This document shows, piece by piece, positions 6,483 through 44,154 of a stretch of DNA of 64,000 nucleotides. This stretch comes from Macrostomum lignano (taxonomy: Eukaryota): assembly GCA_002269645.1 (NCBI GenBank), contig NIVC01003412.1, forward strand, positions 1 to 64,000. The letters are read 5' to 3'. Positions within the stretch are counted from its first letter, which is position 1, and every line of letters starts with the position of its first letter. A program made the position numbers and the translations under genes. The notes beneath the pieces were generated by a model. The model was not told the origin of the DNA. It searched no databases and saw nothing but the letters and a program-made list of their open reading frames with translations.

Positions 6483-7465
<983 letters not shown>

Positions 7466-7531: not shown

Positions 7532-9090
7532 CTTTTTTGCGATTGAATTCGTCCAAACTGCAAAACCTTTCGTACACTAACGCTTTCTTAATGGGAGCTA
7601 AATTTAGATTATACCATAGACAACTGTGTTCACGCAAAACGGTTCATCCAGTTTGTAAAACATTTCGTCTAAACCCTTCGTCCAAACAGCTAACAGCTAA
7701 ACGGAGCGACTTTATTTGATATCACGAGATATTGAACAAAGCAAAAACAGTGTCTCTTGTTAGAATGTTAGTTCAAAATGTCTTCGTAGTCCAAACAGCG
7801 GCCGTAGTAACCCACAGTGTGATTGGTCCATTGCTGGCAGTTCTCCTGTGTAATCACGTGCAGTGCAGCTTCGACCTCTCTCTTCAAAATGTGCATCCGC
7901 CAGGCATGCAGAGTCAGGTTCGCAGCAGCAGCAGCTTGCCGATTAGAGAGCTCGTGCTGAATAGCGGGAACTGACAGTGCACTCTTCACTGATGCCTTCA
8001 GGGAAGACCCTGCGCGCTCAGTTGGGTTGAGATACGGTGAGTACGGTGGCAATTGATAGGTGCTGTGTTGCGGTGAAAGTCCAGAGACTTGAAGGTGAGC
8101 GCGGGCCCCATCAAAGATCACCACCCACTCAGCCTCCACCAGGACATCCAGCTCTACTAAGAAGTCTGCAAAATTTTGAGCTCGAAAACCTCCTTCCACC
8201 AGCGCATAGTGAACAAGTCCCCATTGCGGAGATATGGCCAAGCAGAGAGTCAGGTTTTGTCCGCGCTGGCCACATACCGTTCTCACCGCAGGCTGGCCTC
8301 GATATGCCCATCCTTGAGTTCTCGCCGTCCACAGGTTCAGCCCGAACTCATCGAGAAAAATCTGGTTCCTGTCGTGTCCTTCGTTCATCATCCACTGTGC
8401 GTACTCACATCTCGCCACCTTCACAACTGGGTCGTTCCAATCAAACGTAATCTGCCTAGCCAGCTTCAAAGTCACCAGCTGTTTGTCAAGTGCTCGACTT
8501 ATGGTTGAGACATGAGGAAGTTGACCTTCGTTGCCAAGTTGCATCAGATGGTTCCGCATCATTTGTAATGTCGCGGACGGGTTTGCCTCGAGGAACTCGA
8601 TGATTGACTCAATCTGCTGCTCTTGCAGTTGCTTCGGACGGCCACCTGCTGATGGAAGCTTCTCAATGCCCCCGGTTTGAACGTAGGTGTCGACAATCGT
8701 TTTGGCTGTCTTTCTCTTGATCCCAAGGATATCGGCCAGTTGTTTCCAATCGCGGCCTTCTTCAACAGCCAAGGCTAATCGCCTGCGGTCTTCGTTTGAC
8801 ACTGGATGGTAGGGGCCTCGGTTCATCTTCGACTGTTTTGCCGGGTTCAGAATGGAAGATATGCGTTGCTGTAGCTGAAGTGGTAGCAAAAGCGAACTGT
8901 CAATTGGGTGTTAACTATGGTAGGAACAGTACACTCGGTCTCTAGTCTAGGGGACGAAATGTTTTACAAACTGGATGAACCGTTTTGCGTGAACACAGTT
9001 GTCTATGGTATGATCTAAATTTAGCTACCATTAAGAAAGCATTTGTGGACGAAAGGTTTTGCAGTTTGGACGAATTCAATCGCAAAAAAG
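7532..9090 (-). mobile_element. Tc1/IS630-like DNA transposon, 1559 bp, 138-bp TIRs, TA target duplication
   Basis: TIRs 7532-7669 and 8953-9090 (5 mismatches), TA at 7530-31 and 9091-92, internal transposase ORF. Confidence 0.92.
7768..8826 (-). CDS. Tc1/mariner-superfamily DDE transposase, 352 aa from the ATG at 8826
   Basis: N-terminal HTH-like region; catalytic motifs IFLDEFG, VIFDGARAH, LPPYSPYLNPTE; no stop codons. Confidence 0.9.
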   Translation of the reverse strand: MNRGPYHPVSNEDRRRLALAVEEGRDWKQLADILGIKRKTAKTIVDTYVQTGGIEKLPSAGGRPKQLQEQQIESIIEFLEANPSATLQMMRNHLMQLGNEGQLPHVSTISRALDKQLVTLKLARQITFDWNDPVVKVARCEYAQWMMNEGHDRNQIFLDEFGLNLWTARTQGWAYRGQPAVRTVCGQRGQNLTLCLAISPQWGLVHYALVEGGFRAQNFADFLVELDVLVEAEWVVIFDGARAHLQVSGLSPQHSTYQLPPYSPYLNPTERAGSSLKASVKSALSVPAIQHELSNRQAAAAANLTLHAWRMHILKREVEAALHVITQENCQQWTNHTVGYYGRCLDYEDILN

Positions 9091-12067: not shown

Positions 12068-13852
12068 ATGGAAGGTTCATTTAGCGCAAGACTGTCTGAG
12101 AAGATGCGGTTCGCGGGATTCCACTCAGCGAATGCAAAAATTCAGTCGGCCATGGCGTCAGTGATTGAGGACACTCTGAGGTTTCTGGTCAAGACTGACA
12201 ATCTGCATCTGTTCGGCAGCTACTCTGACGGATGGGGCAGCTCGCTGACTCAGCTGGATGGAAGCGTGGAAGAAAGCAGCGACATTGACGTCACAATTGT
12301 TTCACTGTCAGTTCAGAGAAAATCGTTCCACCTCACTGGGGATTTGAAGAATGAGCATGGGCAGTGTCGCCACGACCACCTGCTCACACTATACTCTGAT
12401 GGCCACGCCGACATATCAAGCAGAGGTCAGTAGGTCCGGTGTCAGTTTTTACCACTGCACGAAAATGTGAAGTTTTCAATTAAAAACGTCTAGATTCCAA
12501 TTTTTCCGACCTAAGTAATTGCCTGAATAAAACGAATTCTCTTGGTTAAATTCTTGTAATAACATACTACCAAATCAACAGCCTCGGCACCAAATATTAT
12601 TCTGGGTGACCCAAACGTGAGCGTCTTCAGCGCTTTCGACATCATCGTCGCCCTGCCGTGCTGCGGATATCCGCCAATCGAGCTGCTGCTGCCGGTCTAC
12701 AAGAATCGCCGCGGTGGTGCCTCACGAATCCAGCCGCACATCCTGCAGATGCTCAGCGACGAGGTCAACAGCGAGACTCCGAGGTGTCACGTAGTCGTGG
12801 CGTCGCCTCCGAACGTCAGTCAAGGAACTCGCATGCGAGTGAGCACGACTCTGCTGGAGAGAGCTCTGCTCAGAAACCTCAACACGATTCAAGGCCAGTT
12901 CTTCCTCATCATTAAGTTTCTCATCAAGAAGGTCATCAGCGAGCGAGTCACCGGTCCGAAGACCTACATGGCCAAGAACCTGCTGTTCTACATGCTCGAC
13001 GAAACGCCCGAAGACGACTGGAAGCCGGAGAACTTGCTGACTCTCGTTCGCAAGTCGTTGCAGATGTTTGTCGAAATGATGCAGAGCTCAGACTCAGATG
13101 ATGTGTGCATGAAGCACTTCTTTCTTCGCGATGCAGCCGTGTACTTCAAGAAGGACCACCAGCCGAAATCAGAGATTATTCAAGAAGTCCAAGATGTCAT
13201 TCAGAGCCTGCTCAATGAGTTGACAGTGTTCATGGACTCGCTCTCAGAGGTCGCAGTGACTTCGGTGCAGTTCCACACCATCTTCGGTCTTCTCCTTCTG
13301 GTGGAGATGCACGAATCCAGTCATGATGAGGAGCAGGTCATGCGCGCCTTCCACACTGTGCTCGAAGCCCATGCGGCAGTGACCAAGCATTTCTCCGGCA
13401 AATCACCTGACGAGCATCTTGACGCTCTGCTGTCTCTGATTTCTCTCGTTCCCGACTGCACCAAGGTGTGCAGAGAGTGGCTGAGAGCGCTGGCTCATTT
13501 CAGGGTCGGCAAGTCGCTGGACGAGGCAGTCGAGCCGTTCGCCTATTCCATCAGTAGAGGCATCGCGTGCCCTCCGCTTGGACCCGAGTTGAGCTTTGAC
13601 GAGGCCAAGGCAGCCGTGCTGTGGATGCTGGCTGATCTGGAGCCCATGCGAGTCGAAGTTCAGAACGGCAAGATTGTCGGCTCCGCTCTTAAAGAGCAGT
13701 TTGCTATAATAGCCTCTCTTGTTGCCGCCCTGACTGACGGAGATGTGCCGGGCAGCGTTCTGGTATTTAGCGAGCTGCTCCGCAGCTCACCCGTGCTGCC
13801 TCTGATATTCAAGGACCGCGTGAGCATGACTGAAAGTTTTATGGTTGATTAG
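12068..13852 (+). CDS. cGAS-like receptor (Mab-21 family nucleotidyltransferase), 2 exons, 542 aa
   Basis: Exons 12068-12425 and 12582-13852, joined in frame by a phase-1 GTCAGT...CAG intron; GSYSDG...SDID motif, third Asp in FDIIVAL, Mab-21 C-lobe motifs RVSTTLLE and KTYMAKNLLFY. Confidence 0.88.
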
Positions 13853-15574
13853 GGCGATAAAAGCTAGTAATTATTACTCTTCTATTCCCTGAGAGCCGAG
13901 CAATTCTTTCAGAGAATTTTGATTGTTAGAGCAAATTTTTATATAGGTTTGTAAGAAACCTATAAACATATATTGTTAATAGGTTTTCGGTGGTTTGATA
14001 AAAACAACCCGCATATCCTTATTTCAGAAAACAAACCTGTCCGAGTACGGTGCGACGCTTCTGACGCAGCATCTGCGTAATGTCGTTGCTAGCGGTACGC
14101 TAGACTCTCGCGATGACGACGAGTCGAACTTCGAAGCTTCTGGTGATCACCATCGACCATTGGAAGAAGATGAACTTGACTGACTTTCGGGGGAGTTAAA
14201 AACTTATAAAAATTTACTGTTAAGGAAATTCAGTCCAGAAATTTCTCACTGGGCCTGAACGGACAAGCGCAGGTACATGAAATTCAAGAATACGGGCAAG
14301 CTTTTAGAATAAGAATCGCGTCGCCACCTCCGCAAAATGACGAGACATTCAACGATTCTGACAAAACGTCCATGTCTTCCTAAAAACGCTAACGCATCGG
14401 TGTTATCCATTGTGGTAATAATCCACATACTGAACGCCAATCAGCACTGCACCTCAGTACATTTTGCGATGCGTTAAAATTTTATCAGCCGTCAGCCACA
14501 TGTGTCTGCATCATCTCAGCCTATGGAATCTACTGGCCTTCAATTGGTGGCGCCAGCTGATTTTTTGAACTAGGTAGTGACTTTCTCCAATCTTGATCAA
14601 TAAGCCGTGGAAAGTACACTCGGCCAGTTGAAGTAACCAACTGTCTTCGAATAGTCACTGGTGGTGTGGCTATCCATGGTTACGTGACGTGGCTCCGTTC
14701 AGGTGCACCGTTATAAATGTCTGGGAATTGGAGCTGGAAATTGCCCCTTGGTACTAGAACTTACGGGAAAATATTCCCGTCATGAATACATACTCAATCA
14801 CTATGTTTATTCTGATATCAAGCTATTCGATTTAATGTAACATGCATCAAATATTATATTTATCTAACTTAAGCCGGTCGTTTTTTAAGTTACTGTCATG
14901 GATGGCATGGAGTTCTGATTCATGGTCTGTCGTTTTTATAAGATGAAGAACTTATGTATTTACTCAAGTAATAGACCGACCTCTGTATTATCGCACTATT
15001 ATACTTGGACATTTTGCCGTATGAAAATCTGTTTTTCTTTAATTTCTCTTAATAGTAGCTCGCCATACTCAATACACAAGCCGGGTGAAACACTCGTATT
15101 TACTGAAAAAGGGTTGGGCAAACGCGATGAAATGTTTTCTCGAACTTGCACTCAACTAGTGAAAGCGGAAAATTAGTTGAGGGACAATCTTATTAAAGCA
15201 AATAATCAGTTTAGAAGATGGCATACGTTCATTTTTTTACCGCGAGCTTCATTCATTCATTGCGAGCTTAATGATTGCATCTACCTGTAATTAAAGAAAT
15301 CAATCTACGCGATTCACTGAATAAACAACCATCTGTCAGATTTGTCTATCTGACACCATCGATATGGAAATAAAAGTCATTAAAATTATTTTCAGCTAAA
15401 ATACTAGTAATATTGCATAGTATCACTTTGCAATACTGAATACCGGCTACAGTGCTGAAACCCTTCGAAGGTTAGGAATCCTATAGGACGGCTATAGGAT
15501 TGCTAGAGAGAAAGTCATATTACAGATGCTAAAGTTCAAAAGCTAAGATTAGATGTAAAAACAGTGGCTAAAAA

Positions 15575-17205
15575 CCAGCTAGTCCGCGCTTCTTTCACCT
15601 CTTCGAATTTCCTGACGAAGTACTTGAAGAGGCGGGCGAAACTGTTCAGAATGAGGCTTGGAGGGTAGTGGACGAAACCACCGATGAGAGAGCTGGACTG
15701 TTCCCGGAGTTTATTGGTGTTCCCGGAGTGCATCTGGAGCCAGGAGTTCAAGGCGATAGCCCGCTTGATTACTTTGGCCAGTTTCTAACCGATGAGGCGA
15801 TCAACCTAATGGTTGAGTTTACCAATGCTTGAGCGTGGGAGAAGCTGAGAATACTTGAAGAAGATCAGGAAGAAGGAAATCAGCGATTGCCTCCGGCTCT
15901 TTCCGACTGGAAGGACTGCTCTGCCAACGAGATCAAGAAAGTTATAGCCATCATTTTCTACATGGGAATAGTGAAAAAGCCCGAAATCCAGAGCTATTGG
16001 GCTACCAGCAAGTTTCACGACAATCAATTTTTTCAAAGTGAGAACTGCTTATCTCGCAATCGTTTCCAGCAGATTCTGTCGTTTTTTTCGGTTTTATGAT
16101 TGCCGAACAGCTGATGCAGCTGACCCATTGCGCAAAATCCGGCCATTTTTGAGTTATGTACAGCAGATCTGCCAAAGAAAGTTTATGCCCGATAAAGACC
16201 TGGCCGTGGATGAAGAGCTAGTCCAGCACAAAGGCAGACTGGCTTTCAAGCAATACATCCCGACCAAACGGGCCAGGTATGGCATAAAAACCTACTGCCT
16301 ATGCGATTCAAAGACCGGCTACCTTTGGAATATTCTGGTGCATTCAACAACAGACGAAAACAACAAATCCGGGACCGAAATGGCTGCAAACCATCTCTCC
16401 ATCAGCGAGCGAATTGTGGTCGAGTTGTCAAAGAACTTGTTCAATCTCGGCTACCGAATTTTTATTGACAGCTATTTTTGCTCACACCGCCTTGCAAAGT
16501 TTCTGCTGGAGCACAACACCTTGGTGACTGGCACAATTCGCTGCAATCGTGGAATTCCACCTGAGCTCCAGCAGATGCAGATGCCAGCTCCATCGCATCG
16601 CTGCATGCGATTTGGCGATGTACTGGCTATCAAGGTTACGGACCGCAAAGCCAGTGGTGTGAAGACGCTGTACCTCATCGACTCGTTCGGTACAGCACGC
16701 AGTGTCCAGCGACAGAGAATTCGTCGAGGTGGTCAGGTGGACGTCGTCAGCAAGCCGGTTTCCGTCATAAACTATTCAAAGTGTATGGGAGGTGTCGATA
16801 GACTGGACTCTACACTTCAGCCCTACCACCCGAACAGGAAAATGTATCGCTGGCATCAGAAGCTGGGCATACACTCTGCTGCAGCTGGCGCACAACTCCT
16901 GGATTGTGTACCACCTGTCCGGAGGATCGAAGAAGTTTTTACCGTTCATGGAGAATTTGGTCGTCGCGCTGATTGACAGCTCAGGACCTGGGAAAAAGCG
17001 CTGCGTTCGCCCGTTGCCCGACGTTGGCGGAGCTGCGCACCTGCCCGGCAAGCTGCCCGCAACGCCTGGAAACCAGCGGCCCACGCGGCGCTGCCGAGTC
17101 TGCTACCGGAATGGCAGGACTAGGCGGACAGTCTTCATGTGTGAGCAATGCCCAGGTGAGCCCGGACTGTGCGTTCCCGGTTGCTTCCGAGAATGGCACA
17201 GCTAA
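15575..17205 (+). pseudogene. piggyBac transposase, disrupted (stop near 15830, frameshifts near 16090 and 16875)
   Basis: FIGVPG..PLDYFGQFLTDE, AVDEELV, FIDSYF, GGVDRLD (DDD triad), C-terminal CRVC...CEQC...LC...CF..WH. Confidence 0.88.
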
Positions 17206-18513: not shown

Positions 18514-21817
<3,304 letters not shown>

Positions 21818-26456: not shown

Positions 26457-29021
26457 CCCTTAGATGCTGGGTGGCTAGCAGAGCTGACCATAGCCATAGA
26501 ATAGAAGGTGACGAGAAAAAAAATTGGTAGTCTATGGCCAGTGAGGCGCAGAATTGCAGCTCCTTTCCTGCCGAACATGGTCAGCTGAGCTGACCATGGA
26601 ATAAATAGCGCACTCACTCAGTCTGTAGCACTCTGTAGCGACCACTAGAGCAACTTTCATGTACTAACAATGGCACAGAAGAAAGATGCAGTTTATTGTT
26701 GAATTAATTTCGAACTATAAAGTTAAAGGGAAAGTTAAGGTTAAAGTTCAAGCAAAAGAAGATATTTGTCCAAAAGCAACAAAAAATTTATGATTTTGAG
26801 ACGCAACTACATGTACGCTCGTATAGTAGCATATAATAATACAGGGAACAATATTGTGGTAGAGTGCCGCAGTTGGACATTTAATTATTTTTGTTTAATT
26901 AAGACAAAAATAATTAACAATATTTTTGTTTTAAAATACTAATATTTTATTATTTTACTATATTTTTACTATTTTGTCTTAAAACCTCTATATTAAAAAT
27001 AAAGGTAAAAAATTAATAGTCAATGCCGAATACAAACGCGAATTATATAGTACGGCTGGTGAAAGGAGTTCTTTAATTCAGTGATTCACATGCCACCGTT
27101 CAAAGCAGGGACTTGGGCACAGTCCAGGTGCATTCGGACACGCACTGCAGCAGAACACGGTGCGCTTCGCAGTGCCGTTGCGGTAGCACACGCGGCATCG
27201 CTTCACCGGCCTCGGGCACGATTCCCTCGGAGGCAGCTTTGATGGAAAGTGCTGCTGAGCTGCGGCCGCCGCTGGTTGCCTAGCTGCCGTTCGCTGTCTT
27301 CCTGGTCCCGTGGAGTCAACCAGTAGGGTGATGTACAGCTCTCCAGGAATTTGAAGAACTGCAGCCGGCCACCGTGCTTTGAGTATACAACCCATGCATT
27401 GTGTACAAGCAGCAGGCAGAGATGAAACCCCAACTTATGAAACCACTTGTAGGTTTTGCGGCAGCTGTCGTACGGTTTCAGCATGGCATCGAGTCGGTCA
27501 ACGCCTCCCATGCAGCGGTTGTACAGCAGGTTCGAGGCGCTTTTCTGCACTTGCACAGCTTCACCATTCTTGCGAATTCGGTTCGTCGCTACTTTCTGAG
27601 CTGAGCCGTGGGTGTCGATCATGAAGAATGTTTTCAAGCCGCTTTCCTTGCGCTCCAGAATTTTCATGGCCAGCACTGGCAGCTTCCTCATGAAAACTAC
27701 GTCATTCAACGGAACCTGCTGACTGCGCAATGCCAACGGCACTCCACGGTCGGCTCGAACAGTTGCTGTCAGCAGTGTGCTGCGTTCGTACAGAAAAGTC
27801 GCAAGCCGTACTGAAGCAAACCACTTGTCGACGAAAAGGTGATAGCCGAAACCGAGCAAGTCCTTGCAAAGGTGCACTACGATTTTCTCGCTTAGAGACA
27901 GCTGGTCACAACCGAGGTCGTCGCCAAAATGAGAGTTCTCTTCAGCAGTCGAATGTACTAGAAAGTTATACAGGTAGCCAGATGCAGACTCACAGGCGCA
28001 GTACATTTTAATTCCAACTCTGGCTCTCTTCGATGGGATGTACTGCCTAAGCTGAAGGCGCCCCTTGTACAGAATCAGGGACTCGTCGACGCTGACCTGC
28101 TGCTCCGGCTGGTACACGTTCGCGCAGAGCTGCTGAGCCAGACGGAGCAGCGGCCGAATCTTGTGCAGTGGGTCGTTCGAGGCGGGTGCTCGTGCATCGT
28201 AGAAACGAAGGAAGGCCAGCAGCTGCTTGAATCGGTCAAGGGTCAAGCCATTGGGCGATTGAAAAAACGGAGTACTGTGAATGACACTGGTGCTCCAGTA
28301 ATCATGCAGTTCCGGCTTCCGTGAGATGCCCATGAACAGGTACATACCCAACAGCTTGGATATCTCACTGCGGTTTGTGTCCTTCCATGACTTCAGCAAG
28401 CTCGAAACATCTTCTCCATCATGTGTCGCCTGCTCATACTCAGCCCAAGCTTTTGCGTTTGTCCACTCCACGATCTTATCCAGCAGCTCATCGGTTAGAA
28501 ACAGTCGTAGAAAATATTGGATGTCTTCACGGTCTTCGGGAAGGACAATGCTGGGGTTTACACCCGAAATTCCAGTGAAACTGGGGCCGTCTTCAACAAT
28601 GTCTTCGCCTGGCTCCACAAACTGCCAATCGTCTTCTACTTCGCTGATGGTGACCGACTTAGACGACTCGGAGTTCTCCGCTATTCCAGCGTCCCTTTCG
28701 GAGTCGGAAGTCAACAGAATATCCATATTTGGATTGATTTGAATTACATGAATAGAATTGTACAGAATTTGGCACAGCCCTTAATATACTAAAACTGGAC
28801 TGTCTATGGCCAGTCTTGTACAGTTTTGATAAGCGTGTGTGCAACCCATTCCAAATGTACATTCTCCTTCAACCCTAGATTAGACCAGCGATGGCTGGCT
28901 TATCGGCAGGAGTGGCAGTGCAATTCAGTTCACTGAAAACTTGAAATAGTCTATGGTCAGCTCTGCTGACCATGCCGGCAGGAACGGAGCTTTCTATTTA
29001 GGAATTCAGGCTTGAAAAGGT
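26457..29021 (-). mobile_element. piggyBac element 2, 2565 bp
   Basis: TTAA-CCCTT at 26453-61 and AAGGG-TTAA at 29017-25; internal inverted repeat about 26549-26600 / 28947-28990; transposase ORF inside. Confidence 0.9.
27078..28726 (-). pseudogene. piggyBac transposase, one frameshift near 27335 ahead of the Cys-rich C-terminus
   Basis: VSVDESL, FVDKWF, GGVDRLD; CRVC...CSAC...LC..PCF..WH in the second frame. A single indel could be an assembly error. Confidence 0.85.
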
Positions 29022-30099: not shown

Positions 30100-33000
30100 T
30101 CAAGTCTGTCTATCTGGTCTGTTAAAAAAACAGTAGCTACGAGCAGGAGGGCTACTCGTACTCGATGTCTCTCGATGCGACTCGACTTTGAGCTCGAGGA
30201 CTCCGGGTGCTGCATCGAGTCTCTCCAGCTTCTCCCTGACCCAGCTGATCTTCTCCTTGTCCTGCGTCTCCATGGTGACGCGTTTCTCTTTCTCGATCAT
30301 CTCCATCTGCCGCAGGCTGAGCTCCACATGTTCGCGGCAGTCGCTGTAATGAGCCAGAGTGAGCAGCTCCTCCAAGTCCGGGTCTCCAAGCAGCTGTTCA
30401 ATCCAATGATCGAATGCGATTGCAGGTGCCCGATTGCGGAGCAGCTCAGCTTGGAGACTCCAGCTCAGGCAGCGGAAGTTCACGTACAGGTGGGAGGAGA
30501 GAGGCTGCGACAGTCTGGCTGTGAACAGAGTCTGTGTGAACTCGGGAAGGAATGGGAAGCGAGGCGGAGAGTCACAGGGGAGGCAGAACCTCCACGCCCA
30601 GTCTGAGTCTACTGGCAGTTCTATCATACTACTCCCGTACCAGCTACTCTCTTCTCGAATATCTTTTGGCTTCAATCCTGACTCAACCTGATGTCTCTGC
30701 AGCTTCATCGCGAGTCTCTCAGCTTCCTCAGAGTCTCCAAACTTTAAATGCGCCATGGCAGTCATGCACAGGGCGGAGCACTTGCACCACTGCTGCTTAT
30801 GCAGAAGCCTGAGCTGCCTCATCAGGTTGTCTTTATCGCTCGATTCCGACTGCAGCTCGCTCACACACTGATGCACCACACTGTACACGTCTGCGAACTT
30901 GTAGTACATTTCTTGGTAGGCTCTTCCTTCCCTAATCCCCGTGACAACAGGAGGCGCTGTCAGGGGCAGCAGAGTGAATGGGTGAAAGTAGAACTTCTCT
31001 GACTGCAGAGGTCTCACGAGTCTCCTCAGCTGCTCGACCACTCCACCAATGTCGCTTCTCAGCTCAAAAAGTCTTTCCCGGAGCCTCGCCTTCGTGTTGT
31101 CGAAGTCGCCGCAGATTCCAGCATTCTTGAAGTAGAGCGGAGCGTCTTGCATGAAGAAGTGAGGCATGCACTCATTGGGTGAGCTGCTTGAGTCGATGAA
31201 GCTCAGCATCATGTCGAGAGACTCTTTCAGAAGAGCGATCAGATTGCGCGGTTGCCAAGCCTCAGTTTCAGAATCTGTGCCATGCTTCTTGAGCATTGTG
31301 AAGAGCAGAGTCTTTGCATGGTAGGTCTTGAGTCCAGGTGTGTCCAGATTGAGCAGCAAGTGTCTCTTGAAGATAAACTTGATGAGTGTGAACAGCTGGC
31401 CCTGGACTGTGCTCAGCTGTCTCATGATGTCTTTTTCTTGGAAGCTGAAGCTCACTCTGAGCTCGTTGGTCGAGCTCGGTCTGGTCGCCCGCACGAGGTG
31501 AACAAAACCACTAGATGGAAGTAGTTTTCTAACTCTGTCCTTACAGAAACTGCTGCAGCAATCGATCGCATGACACGTGTCCTGTGCAGACCTCACACCG
31601 CACATCGTGGCTGTCACTGCAGGTTGGCTGCCTGAGAGTGGAGTGAGCGGAGATTTGCTTTGTGACGAGTAAAAAATGATGGGTTGGTTTGAAACTGAAG
31701 ATTTTCTACTGGTTGGTTGGGAGTTTCGAGTATTTGACTAATACACATTTTACATACTTGCCAAAAAGGCACATTTTGTTGTTAGAAGTGCGACCACAAG
31801 CTGTGTGCTACAATGCATAGGCTAAAAGGGTCTCAACGAATATCACAAAATAAATTTACCTGGAAAATTTGATAGCTCGTAAGCTAAAAGCTCTAAAATA
31901 TTGCTTGACCCTAAGAAGTAACACTGGCAACCACGGCTGGTTTTATCGAGCCCCTCGAAACGGAGGTGCTTGATGAAATTGGTGCTGGTTCCGGCGTTTT
32001 GAAGCCACAGCGAAGGTCCAGAAATGGGATGACGACGTTCTGAAGTTTGCACCGATAGCCAATCTTGGGAAAAGTCATTGCATTTGGTCGACTGCCAGAC
32101 GCCATGCTATCTGAGAAGCCAGAACAGAAAAGCTACTCTCAGCTGAAGAATCTGTTTCAGCTGAGACGCAAAGCAGCCAAGTTCGAAATCACGCAACACT
32201 ACGCCTTCCACCACATGAAGCGAGAAGAGGGTGAAGAACGTGGTTGCATACGCAAGAAGACTGCGCCAAGCGGCTAAGCATTGTAGCTTCACGGATCTTG
32301 ACGTCCGCCTGAGAGACCATTTCATTTCCGGACTCCACAACAAGGAGCTGAGATAATCAAAAAGCTACTTATCGAGAAACTGGCGAACCTAACCCGATAA
32401 ATTATTTCAATCAATCAATCCCCTACATGGGTTTCGTGTTAGCAGTTACCTGCACGTCATCATTGAGATTCGGGCTAACATGGAGGAGTGCTCGCAGTGC
32501 GAGCATCTAAGCGTCATTAACCAGTATTTTGAGTCAGGAATTTTGTCTATGATAGCATTCTGTACGTAATGTGTAGGCTTAGCCTAGTTGTTGAGGGGGT
32601 TGTAGTCCAGCGGTCAGAGCGCCGGACTTACGACCTAAAGGTCGAAGGTTCGATTCGAGATCCCACTGGAACAATTTGTGTCCTTGAGCAAGACACTTAA
32701 CTCTGTACCAGGCTCCACCAGGTCGGGCTCCGGTGGCAGCGCCTTCAGGGCCGCGCAGTGCCGCCGGCAGGTGACCCGCCCGCGCTGTAGCTGCAGCGAG
32801 TTGCCTTCCACTTTGGTAACGGTCCAGGCCTCGCTCTCGAATGGGGTTTGGCCCTTCAGCGGGTTGAAGCGTTTCCTCAGCACCTGGTCGCCGACCGCGT
32901 AGTTTTGCTCTTTTGGTCTCCGAGCAGCGTCGGCGTGCCGCTTCATTGTCAGCTTCTGCTTGCGGTCATGCTCCCGCAGCTCCTTGTCGTTGATGTGCAC

Positions 33001-36000
33001 CCGCGCTGGAGGCCGCCGGCCGGGGACGCTGTTGCCCATAGCGCGGCCCATCAGCAGCTCTGCGGGGGCGCGCCCGGTTGTGGCGTGTGGCGCCGTCTGG
33101 TACGCCAGAATCCACTCGTCCAAAGCCTCGCGCCAGTTTCTGTTCTCCGCGATTGCGGCGCGGACGACCTTGTTGATCGATCTGTTCAGGCGCTCGGTCA
33201 TGCCGTTGGCCGCTGGGTAGAGCGGAGTGATGGAGTGAATTCCGAAGCTCCTGAGGAAGTCCTTGAACTGCGCCGACGAGAATGGAGGCCCATTGTCCGT
33301 AACGAGCTCCTCCGGGATGCCGAACCTGCAGAATGATTCCCGCAGCTTCGGGATGACTGCCTCCGCTGAAGTAGACTGCATGACTTGCACTTCGGGATAC
33401 CGAGAGTAGTGATCCACGCAGACGAGCAGCATCTTGTTCTGTACCGGACCGAGGAAGTCGGCGCCGATCGACAACCAGGCGCCCTTGGGGATGCTGGACG
33501 GCTGCAGTGGCGTCGCGCTGACTGTCGGCTTATGTGACGCCATGATGCAGCTGCGGCAACTGCTGACGGCCTTGTCCGCATCTGCGCTCATCTTTGGCCA
33601 CCAGACTTTGCTGCTCAGCCTGGCCAGCGTCTTCCGCAGTCCCAGGTGGCCGGCATGTGCGAGGCTCCCGGAGGCTGCTTGGCACCACAATCCTGTCCCG
33701 CCGAAGCAGCACCCCGTCCTCCTCAGCAAGCTCGTCTTGTAGTGCATACAGTGCCCTCAGCTCCGGGTGGCCGAGGTCCCACCTGGCTCCCTGGATGGCG
33801 GCGATTGCGGCTTTGATCAGCGGGTCAGCCTGCGAGTGTCGCCTAATGTCCTCTACAGTGAGCGCTGTCGGCACCGCGGCCTGCAGTACGGCACCGATGC
33901 AGGCGGAGTCCTGCTGTGCGTCTTTGCTGCGCCCGGACATCGCTAGCGGTTGTCGGCTGAGGATGCCCGCTGCGTTCTGAGGCCCTGGGCGGTACACCAA
34001 CTTGAAAGTCATGTGCTGAATCTGCAGAGCCATTCGCTCGACTCTAGGAGGCGGCCTCGACCCTGGCGCCAGCATGTTGACCAACGGCCTGTGGTCCGTG
34101 ATCACATCGAATCGGGGCGCCGTGCAGGTAGAATTGGAATCGGAGACATCCGAATTTCACTGCCAATGCCACTTTTCGGTCTGGGAGTTTCTGGACTCAA
34201 AATCGGAGAGCGTCCGACTGGCATAGGCCACTGGTCTTGAAGTGCCGTCTCCTCGCCGCTGCGCCAAGCGTTTGAGTATCCCCCGTGTTTTCGAATGCAA
34301 GCATGGAGTTTCCCAGAAATGATTTTCTTTTCTGCGTTGAGGAGAGATGTGAGCCACTGATTTTCTCTAGAGCGCCCACCCATTTTCCGGCCCCACGCGT
34401 CAGCCAGTACTCTCTCTGGATCTCTCCAACTCTCTTTCCCTTATCTGTACTCGTAAGTAGGCAAATGTACAGTTGCTGCCACCACCCCATGCAATGCGGT
34501 CTGGGTCGACAAACAATAAATAAATACATGTAACATCGCTTCGCCCTAATGCTGTTTTTGGGATTTTTCGTGCACTGCTAAATCATGCTTTGAACTTTTA
34601 CATGAGCTAGAGAAAATCAATGGCTCACAGGTTGCACATCTGGCTCAATTGGAGCATGTGTAATAAATTATTTTTATGCGGTATACATATAATAATAATA
34701 TGTATGCCTAAAAAGCCTCGAAGATTGTCATGAAATATTTTTACTGGAAAGTATGATGAGCTAAAGGCTCAAAAACATTTAACTTTACACTAAGAAGTAA
34801 CGCTTATTTACACACTTTCCAGTACCCCGTGCCCCGTGGACCCAGTGCCCCGCAGCAAGGCACCAATCAGGCAGTCAGGGCGGCTTCGGTTTATTTTGTT
34901 TGAAATTTTCCAAGTGAGAGCAGCGACACTTCAGCAGAGCCATGCCGCCTACCGTCAATCACCCAATCACCGCTGCAACCACTCTGCTACAATGGGAGCC
35001 TGTGAATTTAAACAAACCAATGGCCCGGCTCAGCCAGTTGTCATCAGAGTTTTCGCTTTTATTTTACCTGCCAGTTGTTCCATCACCGAAACCGACATTC
35101 GCAGTCAGAAGCTGCTGGAGGCTGGGCGCCAATCGGTAGCGAATGTAAAACTGAGCAAAGTTAATGGGCTTCCAGTTGCATGCTGATCTCAGCATTCTGT
35201 TGAACCCAGCCTCACTCACCTGCTCCTACTGCCACCTGTGCGTGGCCCTTTTTGACCTGCAATTGAGTGGCGTCTCTGCATTGCTGCCGATCTCTGTTGC
35301 AGCCACCTTCCAGATGGAGCTCTTGCCCAGCAGCCAGCACAGTCCAGTCAATGTCCGAGTCTGCAGCTGTCCTGCCGTTCACTTGCACCAGACTGTTGGC
35401 CCAGCCCTCTGCGTAGTTGCCTGTCATCCGCCTGCCATCCTGTGTGACGACTCGAGCGACTTCTTCAAGCCAGTCAGCCAGTCTCTGCTGACACTTTGCT
35501 CTCTGCTCGGTGAATCCTGCCTTGGTGAGCAGTCGATGCAGCTCCTCGCTCAGGCGCCTGTCTAGCTTGGAGCCGTCTGAGAGCCTGGAATGATCCAAGA
35601 TGCGTGTGGGTGACTTGCTCAGAGTTGGATGAACAAAACAAGCAGGAGACCTGAGAGTGCAGCTGCTGCAGCACTCAGTCCAACCCAATCTCAACCCTCC
35701 TGAGTTTCGCTGCAATTTCTGTCGCGAGCTGCCAGCCTGTTTGGAAAGCGCAATGTGGCAGTGAAATCCAAACCGGTCAGACTCACTGATAGAGGCCGAA
35801 TTGAAGCGTTGAGTGGCTGCCCGCCAGGCATCTGGGCTTCTGCAATGCGTGAATGAAAGGTTCACTTTCTGGATCGGGGGTTTGAGAATTCTGTGGTGGA
35901 AGTTTTAGAAAAGAAGTGCTTGTTTCTTGCATAATATAAAATACTTAAATATAAAATACTGCTTCATTTTATATTTCTCTAAATTCTGAATTCATCCCTT

Positions 36001-37039
36001 TTTATATTAAGATAAGATTTCGACCGTAACTAGGAGAGAAAGAATCGAAGAACCACTCCCACTTATTATTCTCCCACTTTTACCAGTTAGCTATAAAACA
36101 AAAAGATAACAGTTTCATTTAGAAATTAGTGGTCGAGCCATAGTGTGCTAAACTTGATGCATGTATTCCAAAATTGGCGAAACTCCTCACTTACTCCGTT
36201 CCAATAGGATCCAGCAGTCGCAGCACCTGCCACTGCTCAAATCGCTGTGCCACCTGCGCACACGTCAGATCCCGGCAGTCTCGATGACTCGAATCCGCTT
36301 CTTTGTCCATCAGAGCCTTGGCTGCTCGCAGGTGACCGGCTTCGCACGCTCGCGACAGAACAGTTCGACTCCGACTGTCTTCAGCATGCACTGAGGCATT
36401 GAAATCGATCAGTTTCTCAATGAGCTCGTGATAACCTGCATCAGCTGCCAGCATGAGAGCAGTGGCACCAGTGCTGTCTGGCAAATCTACATGCTTTGAG
36501 CTGACTCGCTCATCATTGATCAGTGTGACAGCAAGAGCAACATGTCTTTGAGAGATGGAGAGACGAAACAGCTGTGTGATGCGAGCTGGCTGCATTCGAG
36601 AGAGAGTGTCGCTGAGAACAGAGTTCATGCCTTCGATGGCCGTTGCTGCAGTGAAGCTAAAAATGCTATTGGACTGGAAGAGCCAGTCAGGCTCGAGGCC
36701 GAGGGAAGCAACATCTTCGTGAAGACGAGAGCAAGCCGCGACTGCACAGTGGAAACGGAGATTCGCACTTTGATCTGGACTTGAGAGACAAGAGAGGAGG
36801 AACTTGACGACTTCTAAGTGACCATTTCTTGCAGCATATTCCGCAGCCTCAATGCAGCACTGGTCTCTGTTTGTTTCGCCAGAGACTGTCGACACAAGAA
36901 ACTTGACGACTTCTAATTTACCGTATTTTGCAGCCGATTTGGCAGCGTTGATGCAGCAGTTATCTCTTTTTGTTTGTTCAGCGATTATGTGCACGAGAAA
37001 CTTGACGACTTCCAACTGCAGTCCATTGGCTTGCAGCAT
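30100..37039 (-). CDS. Ankyrin-repeat / cGAS-like (Mab-21) nucleotidyltransferase fusion, 3 exons, about 998 aa
   Basis: Exons 37039-36195, 35839-35220, 31631-30100 (2997 nt, phases 2 and 1, GT-AG, in frame); ankyrin motifs; GNYAEG...DSDID; third Asp in QDTCHAI; LRVSFSFQE and KTYHAKTLLF. The start codon is tentative. Confidence 0.8.
31940..32395 (+). mobile_element. Ty3/Gypsy gag-like fragment, frameshifted
   Basis: Remnant AYARRLRQAAKHCSFTDLDVRLRDHFISGLHNKELR. Confidence 0.6.
32595..32704 (+). mobile_element. SINE family 1, copy 4 (5' half)
   Basis: GGGGGTTGTAGTCCAGCGGTCAGAGCG...GGTTCGATTC...GTGTCCTTGAGCAAGACACTTAACTC. Confidence 0.85.
32705..34330 (-). mobile_element. Ty3/Gypsy pol fragment (RNase H, H2C2 zinc-binding region, integrase core), frameshifted
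   Basis: RPVAYASRTLS, ITDHRPL, YRPGPQN, HAGHLG...CRSC, DFLGP, TDNGPPF, NGMTERLNR. Confidence 0.9.
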
Positions 37040-37440
37040 ATTTGGCAGCGTTGATACAGCAGTGATCTCTGTTTGTTTGTTCAGCAACTTTCGGCACGAG
37101 AAATTTTACGACTTCTAATTTACCGTATTTTGCAGCCGATTTGGCAGCGTTGATACAGCAGTGATCTCTTTTTGTTTGTCCAGCGATTATGTGCACGAGA
37201 AACTTGACGACTTCCAACTGCAGTCCATTGGCTTGCAGCCGATTTGGCAGCGTTGATGCAGCAGTGATCTCTTTTTGTTTGTCCAGCGATTATGTGCACG
37301 AGAAACTTGACGACATCCAACTGCAGTCCATTGGCTTGCAGCATATTTGGCAGCGTTGATGCAGCAGTGATCTCTTTTTGTTTGTTCAGCGACTGTGTGC
37401 ACGAGAAACTTGACGACTTCTAACTGACCATGTTTTGCAG
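36850..37440 (-). repeat. Tandem ankyrin-coding units of about 100 bp, three carrying a +4-nt lesion
   Basis: Repeated GTCGTCAAGTTTCTCGTG and ATCAACGCTGCCAAA; variant GCAAGCCAATGGACTGCAGTTGGAA (25 nt) versus in-frame GCAAAATACGGTAAATTAGAA (21 nt). Confidence 0.8.
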
Positions 37441-37790: not shown

Positions 37791-38299
37791 TTCAAAGGCT
37801 TGTACAGCCGGTTGCCAGAAAGATTTTACCGCCTTATGTCTCAGCTGCTCATCTTTTTGCAGTCTCTGGCGAGCGCTGACCACAACAGCCTTATCAATAG
37901 TAACTTATCTTCATTGCATGAGAGCTGAATTTGCCCTCTGAGCTCTCCAACCCCCAGCATGGCAACAGAGGCTGCGGCTGCAACGGCCACCCCAGCTGTA
38001 CTTGATGAGGCTGAGAGCACTCATTGTGCCTCAGTGCAGGCTGAGATCTGTAAACGTATTTAATAGCTTACTGAGCGGTGTAAAATGCTGCTCAGACTCT
38101 CACCTGTACTCAGCGTGTTTTGGTCTATTTAAAGCAAAGCAATGAATTGCTTGAAATTGCATCAGTTGGGTGAGTTATTGATTGTGATTGATTGTGAACG
38201 ATACATCATATCTAAATCAATCCAGAAAGTCAATTGACTTACGGCACTCTTGAGTTTCAGTTTCTGTCGAAGCCGCCAAATCAGTCAATACACCTCATT

Positions 38300-38702
38300 T
38301 TTAGCATCCTGTTTGCTAGAACCGCTTCCAACGGATTCATTTCTTGCATTCTGTTTTTCAGAACCGATTCCAACGGATTCATTTCTTGCATTCTGTTTTC
38401 CAGAACCGATTCCAACGGATTCATTTCTTGCATTCTGTTTTCCAGAACCGATTCCAACGGATTCATTTCTTGCATTCTGTTTTCCAGAACCGATTCCAAC
38501 GGATTCATTTCTTGCATTCTGTTTTCCAGAACCGATTCCAACGGATTCATTTCTTGCATTCTGTTTTCCAGAACCGATTCCAACGGATTCATTTCTTGCA
38601 TTCTGTTTTCCAGAACCGATTCCAACGGATTCATTTCTTGCATTCTGATTTCCAGAACCGCTTCCAACGGATTCATTTCTTGCATTATGTTTGCTAGAAC
38701 CG
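38300..38702 (+). repeat. 42-bp tandem repeat, about 9 copies
   Basis: TCTGTTTTCCAGAACCGATTCCAACGGATTCATTTCTTGCAT; open in several frames. Confidence 0.95.
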
Positions 38703-38799
38703 CCTCTTGTAAATTGTAACATCTACACACGGATTGGATGGCCCATCGACCTTTTAAGCGAAGGATTCTGATTTTTCAATCAGATGACTATAATAATGA

Positions 38800-40074: not shown

Positions 40075-43000
40075 TTACTGGAATCGAAGACGTAACGACA
40101 TTACTTCTAATGCATATCTTGCTTTGCTGAGGTGGAAACTTTTACAGCTTTCGGTGGCTAACTTAATTATATAATTTTTCAACACGAATAATGCAATGCA
40201 AAATTTTTGTGGATGAGTGTAGCTCCAGCGCTGAGTCAAAACTGTAAAACTAGCCATCCAGTGGCGCAGCAGGTTGCCAATCAATGCGCCGAATGACGCA
40301 TCTGGTAGTGCATCGAGTGATGCATCGGGCGGGGCATCAGGTAGTTCATCGGGAGGCTCATCGATTTGTACATCATTTGGAGCATCCGATTGCGCATTGA
40401 TTGGTGAATTCGGTGGCATAACATCCAGTGGAACACCTGGTGGTGGTGCATCAAGTGGCTCATTGAGCTGTGCATCATGTGGCGCATCCAGTGGTGCATC
40501 GAGTGGCTCATCTGGTGGCTCATCTGGTGGCTCGTCGGGTGGCTCGTCGCGAAGGGCATCAAGTGGCGCATCCGGTGGCTCATCGGATGGCTCGTCGGGT
40601 GGCTCATCGGCTGGCTCGTCGGGTGGCTCATCGGCTGGCTCGTCGGGTGGCTCATCGGCTGGCTCGTCGGGTGGCTCGTCGGATGGCTCATCAGGTGGCT
40701 CATCGGCTGGTTCATCAGGTGGCTCATCGGCTGGTTCATCAGGTGGCTCATCGGCTGGCTCATCAGGTGGCTCATCGGCTGGTTCATCAGGTGGCTCATC
40801 GGCTGGCTCATCAGGTGGCTCATCGGCTGGTTCATCAGGTGGCTCATCGGGTAGAGCATCAAGTGGCGCATCCAGTGGTGCAACTGGTGGTTCATCGGGT
40901 GGATCATCGCGTAGAGCATCAAGTGGATCATCCAGTGGTGCATCGGCTGGTTCATCAGGTGGCTCATCGGGTGGCTCATCAGGTGGTTCATCGGCTGGCT
41001 CATCAGGTGGATCATCGCGTAGAGCATCAAGTGGCTCATCCAGTGGTGCATCGGCAGGTTCACCAGGTGGCTCATCGGCTGGTTCATCGCGTAGAGCATC
41101 AAGTGGCGCATTCAATGGCGCATCAATTGGCCAACTATAAATGGCGTTTTGGGCCATACTGCGCTGATCGTATGGGCAGCTCTCGTTTAAAAGGTAGCAG
41201 TTTTCTGAAGTACTCGTTGAAGCCTTGCTTGCATTACCTACTGAAGCGCCACCTGAAATCCCAGTTTCATGCTTAATCAAAGGTTGGAAAACATTTTTCA
41301 GTGGTTCAATATCAGCATTTCCTTTCTCAACAAACTGCTCAGAACTATTTAATGAGGTGTAACGTCTTTTGCAGACGATAATTATCACAATGGTTATAAT
41401 TACAAGGACCACCAGAATCGGACAGGAAACTCCAACAATTACAGCCAAGTTACTTGCTGGAGCTTCAGTTGAGGTATGGTCTGGTGCTGATTGCACTGTT
41501 TCTGATAATAACATTCTGCCACTTGATTCAATAGAATTTATCGGCTCTTTAGCGGTCCATTTCTGTCGCGGCGTTTTCAGAACTTTCCAAATGACCGTCT
41601 TAGCGAAACAGCTGGCTGGATAGGGTCCCATAGTGCCTCCTCTCTCAGGAAACTTTACAAGAAATGGAATCTGGCTGCTACAGCTTTTCGATTTGATTTC
41701 CGCTCTGTCCGAAGCATCCACATTCATAGTCACGCACGGACCTGTCGCGCCGTTTGACTCTCTGTAGTTATTTAAAGGTGGTTCCAGGTTAACTCGCAGC
41801 TTATTTTTCATAGCCTCTTCTGTTTTACAGAAGATGAAACGGAATTACTCACACAAAACCCTCAGATCTGAGAACAGGCTTCAATCCACATTCACCGCTA
41901 TCCTGTCTGATTAGAGAGGTCACTGAGGCATCGGCTGCACTGTAGAACATGCCGAGACGCACTGGCTGGCTCAGGCTCAGGGGCCGTCTGTACGGGTGCA
42001 ACGACAGTCTGGCTGTGTCTGAAACCGTTTTGACGCTCATTTTTATAATAAAGTAGCCATGGAAATTGAAAACAAATTATCAGAGTCGTTACTCACTTGC
42101 AGCAATCAGACTGCGGATTTCAGTCATGCTGGAGAAGCTGGCCAGCTCAGCATCGCCTCTGATGCTGGACATTGCGACTGTTAAATTGGCTTTGACTTTG
42201 CTCACAGCGTAGCAGTTTCCGTTAAAGCTGAGCATGTCTCTGTGGCAGAGTCCAGGGAGAATCAGCAGGAGTCTCAGCTTTACCTGGGGGGCACGTTGGT
42301 ACCTCGGATCCCAGCTTGCCTCCACCGTGAGCGGGAACCTAAAATAGTAATGTGATTTTTGTTTACCAATTGTCGGAACACAATTATTTTGGTCGAGTGG
42401 AGACCGTAGCGCAAAGTCATAGTGCTTGTTGACCTGAACGCCTTTATGCCCGAGAGATTTGACCGACATTGAACTAGAAAGCTCCTAGAATTATTGATTA
42501 ACTTTAACCATTGTATATTTTTATACTCGTAGTCAAGGTAAAACATCTTAGATCTACCAATATATTTTAACGTCTTGTTATTTGTACCTGAGGACATCTA
42601 GATTATACTCGTACGAAACGACCAACTAACTACCGTAACTGTATTTCCCGCAACTAGCGCTTCTAAATAGGTTAAGCAAAACAAAGCTGACCGCGAGGTC
42701 GAACTTAGTGAGTAGTACGCCGGTTTCAGTGTTAGTTTTTAAATTTGTAATTAATTTAATTGTTATGCTGTATTTTCTCACAGTATTGTCAATAGCGAGT
42801 CTGAGAAAGAATAATGTTCATAGCAGACTGAATTGCCATGGAACTTTCATGGAACAACCGTGGAATTACCACGGATTTTCGACGGAATTACCGTTTGATG
42901 TTTTCAGAGTGTTGCTACTTTTCAATTTCTATAGCTATTTGATCCTGTTATTATTTCAATCGCACCCCGTGTGAGCTATATCCATGCTCGTGCTCTATGT

Positions 43001-44154
43001 CAGTGAAATGGGCATGACTGTTTGCCTTCTTGAGTTGATCTCCATTACATTTTTTCTCAGTCTGAAAATTTTCAAGCACCAAAGGATCTCTCTATCTCAT
43101 TGACGAACATGGATTTTTGCGGTTGGACGCGAAACATCCCAGCAGTCACGGGAATTTCTCCTCCGCTGTAGCTGATGACCAACTTTGCTGATCCAGTTTG
43201 ATTCTCTCCCGATTGTAAGCGTAAGTCGGTGTTGTCGGCAGAACCAATGAGCAACCCCTGTAAGACAAGCTGCATGTCTTCTTGAGCAGCAGAATTCTTA
43301 ATTATCCACCTGCATCTCCTGTAGCTCGTATCCAACTCGTCGGTCAGCACTCTCGGAATGATGCTCTCGTCTCGGTGGAAAAAATCGTCAACTGTTATCA
43401 ATAATGTGAGCCCATTCACGCAGTAGTGGTTGGCGCCTTGGCAACTGGAAATGCGGCGAAAACGAAGACACTGACTGTAATAAACAGTGACACAAACTGG
43501 TGAACCGGTCAAAAATATTGACCAAATCATCGCTTTTCAAGGGCGGGTGCTAGAAATTAAGAAAATGGGTTTACTCGAGAAAGCTTGACTGCAACTGTTC
43601 GTACACTGCTGTCTGAGCGTTTGTGTAAAAAATAGCTGCTCCCATAGTCTTATAGTTATCAATGCTGGCAAGGGGGGCCGTAGCCCAGCGGTAGCGCAGC
43701 TGCTCTGGTGTGCCGCGACCCAGGCTCGATTCCAAGTGCAGCCACATTAATTTGGGGCTGGATTGGAATTTCGGCTTGGCTCGCCTGTGCAATTAACGGC
43801 CTTGAGAGCCAACCCCCCAAGAGGCAGTGAAATGTACATGCCTAAGAATTAATAAAGTTAGGGCCGCTGTACACTCCTGTGTGAGTGTGTGCCTGCGTAA
43901 CGTATCCGCGCGCTTGTATGCCTGCTCAGGGGAGTCGGCGAAATGGGCAGTAATGCCTCTCGCCGGTTGTGTGCCTATGTCGCCTAAAGTGCGCCAGGGT
44001 GCACACAATCCCCCTGCCTCTAATAAAAAATAAAAAAAATCAATGCTGGCACATCTAAAGTCAAGATTTAACGGATTAAAAGGCAAACTTACACTGATAC
44101 AGTCCGACAGAAAATCGTCACAGTTGCCAATGTCAGCAGGCTGACAGCACGCAT
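40075..44154 (-). CDS. Receptor copy D, 5 exons, about 840 aa, with a long (DEPP/DAPL)n cytoplasmic tail
   Basis: Exons 44154-44093, 43474-43109, 42338-42097, 42018-41853, 41761-40075; in frame (exon-2 donor GTTCGT is weak); TM LAVIVGVSCPILVVLVIITIVIIIVC followed by KRR. Confidence 0.78.
43671..44038 (+). mobile_element. tRNA-derived SINE family 2, full length with A-rich tail
   Basis: 13-bp TSD ATCAATGCTGGCA (43658-70, 44039-51); A-box TAGCCCAGCGG, B-box GGCTCGATTCC; absent from the homologous intron of copy A (about 21700). Confidence 0.9.

Follow-up and report, generated by a model that had tools for sequence, protein, structure and literature searches.

In our study, a 64,000-nucleotide stretch of Macrostomum lignano contig NIVC01003412.1 (assembly GCA_002269645.1), called here the window, was analysed for a gene which starts at position 12068 of the forward (+) strand and which had been proposed to encode a stand-alone cGAS-like receptor (cGLR). 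The start codon (ATG at 12068) was found in the Kozak context AACCATGG, with A at -3 and G at +4, and an in-frame stop lies two codons upstream of it. Exon 1 (12068..12425, 358 nt, GC 0.51) encodes residues 1-119 and the first base of codon 120, and it carries the N-terminal spine helix, the strand beta1 with the GS motif and the strand beta2 with the D-I-D motif; its N-terminus is colinear with the homologs P0001 and P0004. It is followed by intron 1 (12426..12581, 156 nt, GC 0.35), which is of phase 1, has GT..AG borders (GTCAGT...AACAG) and contains in-frame stops, and by exon 2 (12582..13819, GC 0.55), an open frame for residues 120-532 which supplies the remaining nucleotidyltransferase core, the Mab-21 C-lobe and most of a family-specific extension. 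The original prediction had joined two pieces across this 156-nt intron, and the junction is well founded: splicing leaves one frame, the best homolog (P0001, E 1e-159, with 50 % identity between the two second exons) is colinear across it and the intron lies at the same codon (residues 119/120) as in the P0001 gene (locus L001). As judged from these features, the locus is a real, intact gene and the junction is not a product of chance.

The 3' end of the gene is probably different from the one first proposed. Exons 1 and 2, read through to TAG at 13850-13852, give a spliced translation of 542 amino acids, and this was the earlier length. The segment 13820-13852, which holds the last 10 codons and the stop of this version, has an intron-like GC of 0.36 and falls within a proposed intron 2 (13820..14027, +, 208 nt, phase 0, GC 0.33, GTGAGC...ttatttcag) with splice consensus on both sides; its pyrimidine-rich acceptor, tatccttatttcag, has its last base at 14027. 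Proposed exon 3 (14028..14183, +, GC 0.51) is an in-frame open reading frame (ORF) of 51 codons for residues 533-583, reading KTNLSEYGATLLTQHLRNVVAS...EEDELD and then a stop, and would add an acidic tail. P0001 has an intron at the place equivalent to proposed intron 2 and, after it, a third exon encoding its last ~36 residues; the two tails are alike (LSELRNFTRHLRTIVTS...IEDDID in P0001 and LSEYGATLLTQHLRNVVAS...EEDELD here), and that of P0002 is also similar. The exons in general show a strong bias in GC and in GC at the third codon position (GC3). Because of the donor GTGAGC at 13820, the acceptor at 14027, the exon-like GC steps and the third exon of P0001, it is quite likely that the product has 583 residues, that the gene ends at 14183 with three exons and that the stop at 13852 represents intron read-through, a third exon having been missed. 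Just past 14183 no canonical AATAAA was found, only a TATAAA-like variant which was not used as evidence.

The stand-alone character of the protein is also confirmed. A tblastn search with eight ankyrin-bearing paralogs has shown no ankyrin-coding sequence upstream of 12068 on the forward strand, the sole match being at 36281-36490 on the reverse strand; many M. lignano paralogs and the second family member of the window, unlike this protein, carry N-terminal ankyrin repeats. The best database relative is the M. lignano protein P0001 (BOX15_Mlig010774g2), with 50 % identity over 98 % of the length. The exact protein is absent from public protein sets, and no catalogued protein exceeds 50 % identity. 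All of the named homologs are from Macrostomum lignano, as are the matches to the Mab-21 part that were looked up (10 of 10). The family is a very large one: ~45 clusters are obtained at 50 % identity, a count which comes from an exhaustive representative search with an alignment (A1) which holds ~128 ankyrin columns, so that most of its 346,153 matches were ankyrin proteins and only the ~45 which cover the Mab-21 part were retained. When the gene was compared with a phage collection by megablast nothing matched, which is what one would expect of an animal gene.

The core of the protein was assigned by its predicted fold and by family profiles. The AlphaFold2 model, made with the family alignment, has a predicted local distance difference test score (pLDDT) of 81.6 and a predicted template modelling score (pTM) of 0.87. 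In a Foldseek comparison with the PDB, all of the 50 listed matches were cGAS, MAB21L1, Cv-cGLR1 (8gjw) or MB21D2 (7lt1), with a best E of 4e-7, a probability of 1.0 and template modelling (TM) scores of ~0.5-0.55 per target. The modelled N-lobe has a spine helix (residues 20-41), a beta1 strand ending in G50-S51 and a beta2 strand with D72-I-D74, as the Pol-beta nucleotidyltransferase fold requires. According to the model, the N-terminal ~340 residues form the bilobed cGAS/Mab-21 fold with the domain boundary near residue 340, and the Pol-beta-type fold on which the original prediction depended is borne out by the structural comparison. The Pfam model Mab-21_C covers residues 244-322. It was matched by all 16 family members scanned (best E 6e-9), so the Mab-21 assignment is clear for the family, whereas the query alone stays below the cut-off; against cGAS chains the query alone reaches E ~0.06. 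A profile search of the PDB with A1 was swamped by ankyrins and was repeated with a trimmed alignment (A2), for which the best sequence match was 8gjy ('cGAS-like receptor 1', E 0.0026). The family was further compared by hhalign with an alignment that combines six invertebrate cGLRs with the cGAS of human and mouse, and the result was 97.8 % probability and E 7e-13. The homology of the C-lobe and of the strand with the third Asp is therefore significant by sequence, and that of the N-lobe is supported by motif pattern and fold only. An OAS-type assignment was rejected, as the top 50 fold matches include no OAS structure and no OAS Pfam match was found.

All five catalytic positions of cGAS are present in the core (G50, S51, D72, D74 and D139). 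The motif FGSYSDGWG (12212..12238, +) occupies residues 49-57; Mab-21 proteins usually have the GS motif in the form GS..[DE]G. G50 and S51 correspond to the nucleotide-binding G212 and S213 of human cGAS; GS is present in 13 of the 14 family members compared, D54, G55 and G57 are invariant and W56 is nearly so. SDIDV (12278..12292, +, residues 71-75) supplies the first two metal-binding acids, D72 and D74, which correspond to E225 and D227 of human cGAS. This DxD motif is kept in every one of the 14 members and lies on strand E72-78 of the model; its register with cGAS is taken from the pattern and the whole-chain fold match, the N-lobe profile alignment alone not being significant. The third catalytic Asp, D139, is found in FDIIVALPCCGYP (12635..12673, +, residues 138-150), lies on strand E137-146 and corresponds to human D319; SAFDIIVAL pairs with ISVDITLAL of human cGAS in hhalign (97.8 % probability). 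It is present in 12 of the 14 members, and the two which lack it look like faulty gene models. A C..YP motif after D139 is similar to the C..WP of invertebrate cGLRs. The intact triad read earlier from GS-x-x-DG, SDID and the Asp of FDIIVAL (residues 49-57, 71-75 and 138-144) is thus upheld by its conservation in paralogs and by the placing of D139 on cGAS D319.

The C-lobe signature motifs (12782..13123, +) were found to be RCHVVV (residues 187-192), RMRVSTTLLER (203-213), KTYMAKN (246-252), DDWKP (264-268) and CMKHFF (295-300). The residue pairs given by hhalign with human cGAS are D139-D319, R205-R376, S207-S378, E212-E383, Y248-Y436, K251-K439 and W266-W455, and R205, S207, E212, Y248, K251 and W266 do not vary within the family. 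Among 14 paralogs which share only 26-50 % identity, both the catalytic residues and those in contact with the nucleotide are kept, whereas just one of the five catalytic positions is retained in non-catalytic Mab-21-like proteins (Wu et al. 2014, PMC4117786). This apparent purifying selection on the active site argues for catalysis. In the A2 alignment, unusually many invariant or near-invariant Cys and His residues were also observed in the core (H88, H113, C146, C147, C188, H189, C295 and H298) and in the extension (C412 and C449), which might form a metal site or disulfides tying the extension to the core.

In comparison with human and mouse cGAS (e.g. PDB 4k9b and 8shy), the protein shares the bilobed Pol-beta-type nucleotidyltransferase/Mab-21 fold, the active site of G-S, acid-x-acid and Asp, and the equivalents of R376, S378, E383, Y436 and K439. 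The identity is only ~12-16 %, and the segment from beta2 to the third Asp has 62 residues here in place of ~91. The protein has no basic N-terminal tail, its surface is acidic and not basic, and it carries an extra C-terminal module of ~240 residues. With the invertebrate cGLRs (Crassostrea virginica Cv-cGLR1, 8gjw; 8gjy; Drosophila cGLR1) it shares the plan of a stand-alone Mab-21 enzyme without a zinc thumb and the motifs GS..[DE]G, hDh...C..[WY]P, CHhV, R.S...E, SY..K and C..[YF]F. Those proteins end shortly past the C..YF helix, whereas here a tail domain is obligatory; the characterised ones respond to double-stranded RNA (dsRNA) or double-stranded DNA (dsDNA) and signal to STING. MAB21L1 and MAB21L2 (PDB 5eog and 5eom) have the same fold and are among the top structural matches. 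They have a developmental role and lack the GS motif and most of the catalytic acids (one of five kept), as opposed to five of five in this protein. Assignment to this MAB21L1/2-type non-catalytic class was rejected, since all five catalytic positions are present and conserved.

The extension in full spans residues ~341-583 (~240 residues), and its exon-2 part (13244..13819, +, residues 341-532) has eight helices and one beta-hairpin by DSSP of the model. The helical tail described in the original prediction is therefore mostly but not wholly helical. Its conserved motifs here are VPDC (409-412), ALAHFRVG (422-429), GIACP (446-450) and LSFDEAK (456-462), for which the family forms in alignment A3 are VPDC, LRALAhh+hG, GIxCP and LSh.EAK. 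The proposed parallel between ALAHFRVG and AMAHLKFG of the second Mab-21 gene in the window was found to be sound, the two extensions being homologous. Local hidden Markov model searches place the extension immediately after the core in 55 of 67 family proteins; without the core it was seen only in three short fragments. Mean pairwise identity is 23 % in the extension, 54 % in the C-lobe and 39 % in the N-lobe, so that divergence is roughly twice as rapid in the extension as in the core. Taken alone, the extension has no Pfam match (12 members, family level) and no PDB sequence match, and the fold search with Foldseek reached a best E of 0.68 with probability <=0.16, a weak negative because the isolated model has a pLDDT of 58. 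The homolog search with A3 returned one short M. lignano fragment mislabelled as ferritin and missed known members, and is uninformative on absence outside Macrostomum. The suggestion of a tetratricopeptide repeat (TPR)-like module was rejected, since the sole TPR signal, given by the whole protein, was TPR_IPO5 at 18.5 bits with a cut-off of 27, and the extension itself has none of the matches named above. In the full-length model residues 340-490 have pLDDT 75-93, whereas the extension modelled alone has pLDDT 58 and pTM 0.43; because its confidence is high in the first and low in the second, the extension appears to pack on the core rather than to form a free domain.

The family to which the gene belongs has been described before. 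Li et al. 2023 (Cell; preprint PMC9980059) defined cGLRs by motif, two-lobe homology and predicted fold, with the motif spaced as GS, 8-20 residues, [DE]h[DE]h, 50-90 residues and h[DE]h; the spacing here (G50-S51, 20 residues, D72-I-D74-V, 62 residues, F-D139-I) fits it. Table S3 of the same work lists 140 purified proteins, five of them from M. lignano (nos. 89-93). One of these five has 46 % identity with the protein studied here, and the second gene of the window has near-orthologs in two of them. The nearest listed protein, P0002 (PAA57558.1, BOX15_Mlig007108g1), has the same core, signature motifs and C-terminal extension, and the M. lignano relatives share the codon of intron 1, an equivalent third exon and 46-50 % identity over almost the full length. 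M. lignano is not in the published cGLR/STING count table. The family is thus not new: its M. lignano members are already catalogued as cGLRs, none of them biochemically characterised, and the present gene is one more paralog. Another member, P0016 (1346 residues), was observed to hold two complete core and extension units in tandem (residues 23-589 and 770-1320), which represent either a genuine fusion of several cGLRs, such as Li et al. mention, or two neighbouring genes merged by annotation.

The window is eukaryotic DNA, in which short introns with GT..AG borders, arrays of microsatellites and a number of transposase ORFs were seen. The second family member, with N-terminal ankyrin repeats, lies on the reverse (-) strand at 30100-37400; its ankyrin exon runs from at least 37400 to ~36195, its Mab-21 N-lobe exon covers ~35865-35215 and its last exon ~31635-30100. 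It is 74-82 % identical to PAA93208 and PAA68676 of M. lignano, two proteins on the screen list of Li et al. In place of the G-S of these M. lignano proteins, its GS motif has G-N (MTGNYAEGW, near 35416-35418), and this change could impair nucleotide binding. A retroelement pol fragment (Pfam Integrase_H2C2 and rve, 32635-34105, -) is placed inside its long intron, in a block with a GC of 58 % which is unusual for the window. Transposase ORFs were found at 7768-8889 (-), 16038-17205 (+) and 27203-28726 (-), one of them Tc1/mariner-like (DDE_3 and HTH) and two piggyBac-like (DDE_Tnp_1_7); of the piggyBac-like pair, one is full length (507 residues) and the other is split by a frameshift.

Several gene pieces occur more than once in the window. 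Paralogous ORFs at 40075-41811 (-) and 61636-62922 (-) both start with MKNKLRVN and have a predicted membrane helix and Pro/Asp-rich repeats (PDEPADEPPDEP), two near-identical ORFs of 152 residues lie at 43072-43530 (-) and 50430-50888 (-), and three similar exons (19341-19730, 42089-42469 and 63087-63440, -) show a pattern like that of C-type lectins (...SF.GNCY..S...A...). None of these pieces has a Pfam match above threshold, and their repetition suggests segmental duplication. P0001 also has a Lectin_C gene as a neighbour in M. lignano. Micro- and minisatellite arrays cover 36-992, 1317-1673, 6493-7157, 19873-21114, 38234-38730, 40274-41276 and 56707-58899; they read as repetitive ORFs in several frames (SIYL, PVLPL, NLT and VPYSKT repeats) and coincide with strong excursions of GC skew. 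Repeats are also shared between the window and an M. lignano contig, at 80-93 % DNA identity.

Taking these results together, we consider it probable, with fair but not high confidence, that the locus is an intact three-exon gene for a ligand-gated, cGLR-type nucleotidyltransferase which makes a nucleotide second messenger and in which the extension is regulatory. In such an enzyme, two nucleoside triphosphates would be bound with two Mg2+ ions on the Asp triad and, once the enzyme is switched on, would be converted to a second messenger of the cyclic di- or oligonucleotide type. Packed on the core, the extension may act as the regulatory part or as the part which recognises a ligand or partner, and the ankyrin repeats of the ankyrin-fused paralogs would add to this recognition role. 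Activation by nucleic acid (dsDNA or dsRNA) appears doubtful from the composition of the protein, because both the core and the tail (isoelectric point 4.9, net charge -19) are acidic, unlike cGAS, and the relatives listed without activity point the same way. With acidity in the core, the spine helix and the tail alike, activation would more likely come from a protein or other non-nucleic-acid cue than from naked dsDNA or dsRNA.

A number of points weigh against this reading. The query alone scores 20 bits with Mab-21_C, where the cut-off is 24.1, and has no match to the N-terminal Mab-21 Pfam model; an hhalign comparison of the N-lobe only with cGAS was not significant and placed a one-residue gap inside the DxD motif. 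The GS motif is preceded by F in L-F-G-S and not by Q or T, so that neither the query nor any of the paralogs tested fits the strict regular expression h[QT]GS. The M. lignano proteins accepted by Li et al. (PMC9980059) have M, L, F or T before GS, and therefore the Q/T position was evidently not applied strictly in that work. The core has an isoelectric point of 5.9 and a net charge of -7, and its spine helix has a net charge of +1 as compared to +7 in mouse cGAS. For all five M. lignano proteins, the note column naming active enzymes in Table S3 of Li et al. is empty. The packing of the extension is drawn solely from model confidence scores, the gene sits among transposons, and cGAS and STING are reported to be lost in Schistosoma (Wu et al. 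2014, PMC4117786) and in the planarian Schmidtea (2026 paper).

Several of these points are shared by the main rival, in which the protein would be a catalytically silent scaffold or adaptor of the Mab-21 fold, like MAB21L1/2 or MiD49/51, binding partners through the extension and retaining its acidic residues by inheritance. The five relatives without labelled activity, MAB21L1 among the top structural matches, the acidic surface with no evident zinc thumb, the non-canonical residue before GS and the reported loss of the cGAS-STING pathway in other flatworms all fit such a scaffold. The conservation described above does not: little or no variation is seen at the five catalytic positions and at the residues that contact the nucleotides in paralogs of 26-50 % identity, whereas only one of these five positions is retained by the known non-catalytic Mab-21 proteins, and on this ground catalysis is favoured. 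The empty column is also less telling than it seems, as failure in vitro is common for cGLRs without a known ligand and only 15 of the 140 purified proteins were reported active. We therefore regard a silent scaffold as unlikely, while it is the strongest of the alternatives.

A canonical nucleic-acid sensor is less likely again, and we hold it to be distinctly improbable. Such a protein would bind dsRNA or dsDNA on the face of its spine helix, make a dinucleotide like cyclic GMP-AMP (cGAMP) and signal to a Macrostomum STING, with the extension as an accessory. The fold and active site are as in nucleic-acid-activated cGLRs, and all cGLR ligands found so far are dsDNA or dsRNA (Li et al. 2023, PMC9980059); the acidic core and nearly neutral spine helix, the relatives not marked active in the published screen, the obligatory extension in the family and the lack of a known STING in the lineage (no STING search was made here) speak against it. 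The least likely case, to which we give very little weight, is a recently duplicated, unexpressed or decaying paralog without a function of its own in a transposon-rich region, for which the flanking Tc1-like and piggyBac-like transposase ORFs, the ~45 clusters of the family, the absence of the exact protein from public sets and a neighbouring member with GN for GS and a retroelement fragment in its intron may be cited, but which is at odds with ~1.75 kb of coding sequence uninterrupted across three exons, consensus splice sites at conserved intron positions, the retention of every family-invariant residue and the strong GC and GC3 bias of the exons.

Returning to the ligand-gated enzyme, a bolder version can be speculated, which we consider a long way from probable: the extension would be a new sensor or gate domain coupling messenger synthesis to a cue other than nucleic acid, for instance a protein of a pathogen or of the host, the messenger would be read by a receptor other than STING, and the whole would represent a rewired cGLR pathway which was kept and expanded in Macrostomum and lost in other flatworms.

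This study has added to the picture of cGLR-type genes in flatworms, which are usually described as having lost the cGAS/cGLR-STING pathway; besides the reports on Schistosoma and Schmidtea cited above, most platyhelminths were found to be without cGLRs by Li et al. 2023 (PMC9980059). Macrostomum is an exception, with dozens of cGLR-type genes, all of them with a tail domain which resembles nothing known and many with ankyrin repeats. The locus alone adds one paralog to a catalogued family; what makes it of interest is the uncharacterised tail domain, together with the fact that the family has survived here while the pathway was lost elsewhere in the phylum. Constructs for biochemistry can be designed directly from the gene model as corrected here, from the active-site residues that were mapped and from the domain boundary close to residue 340. 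Since M. lignano serves as a laboratory model, the family is open to experiment.

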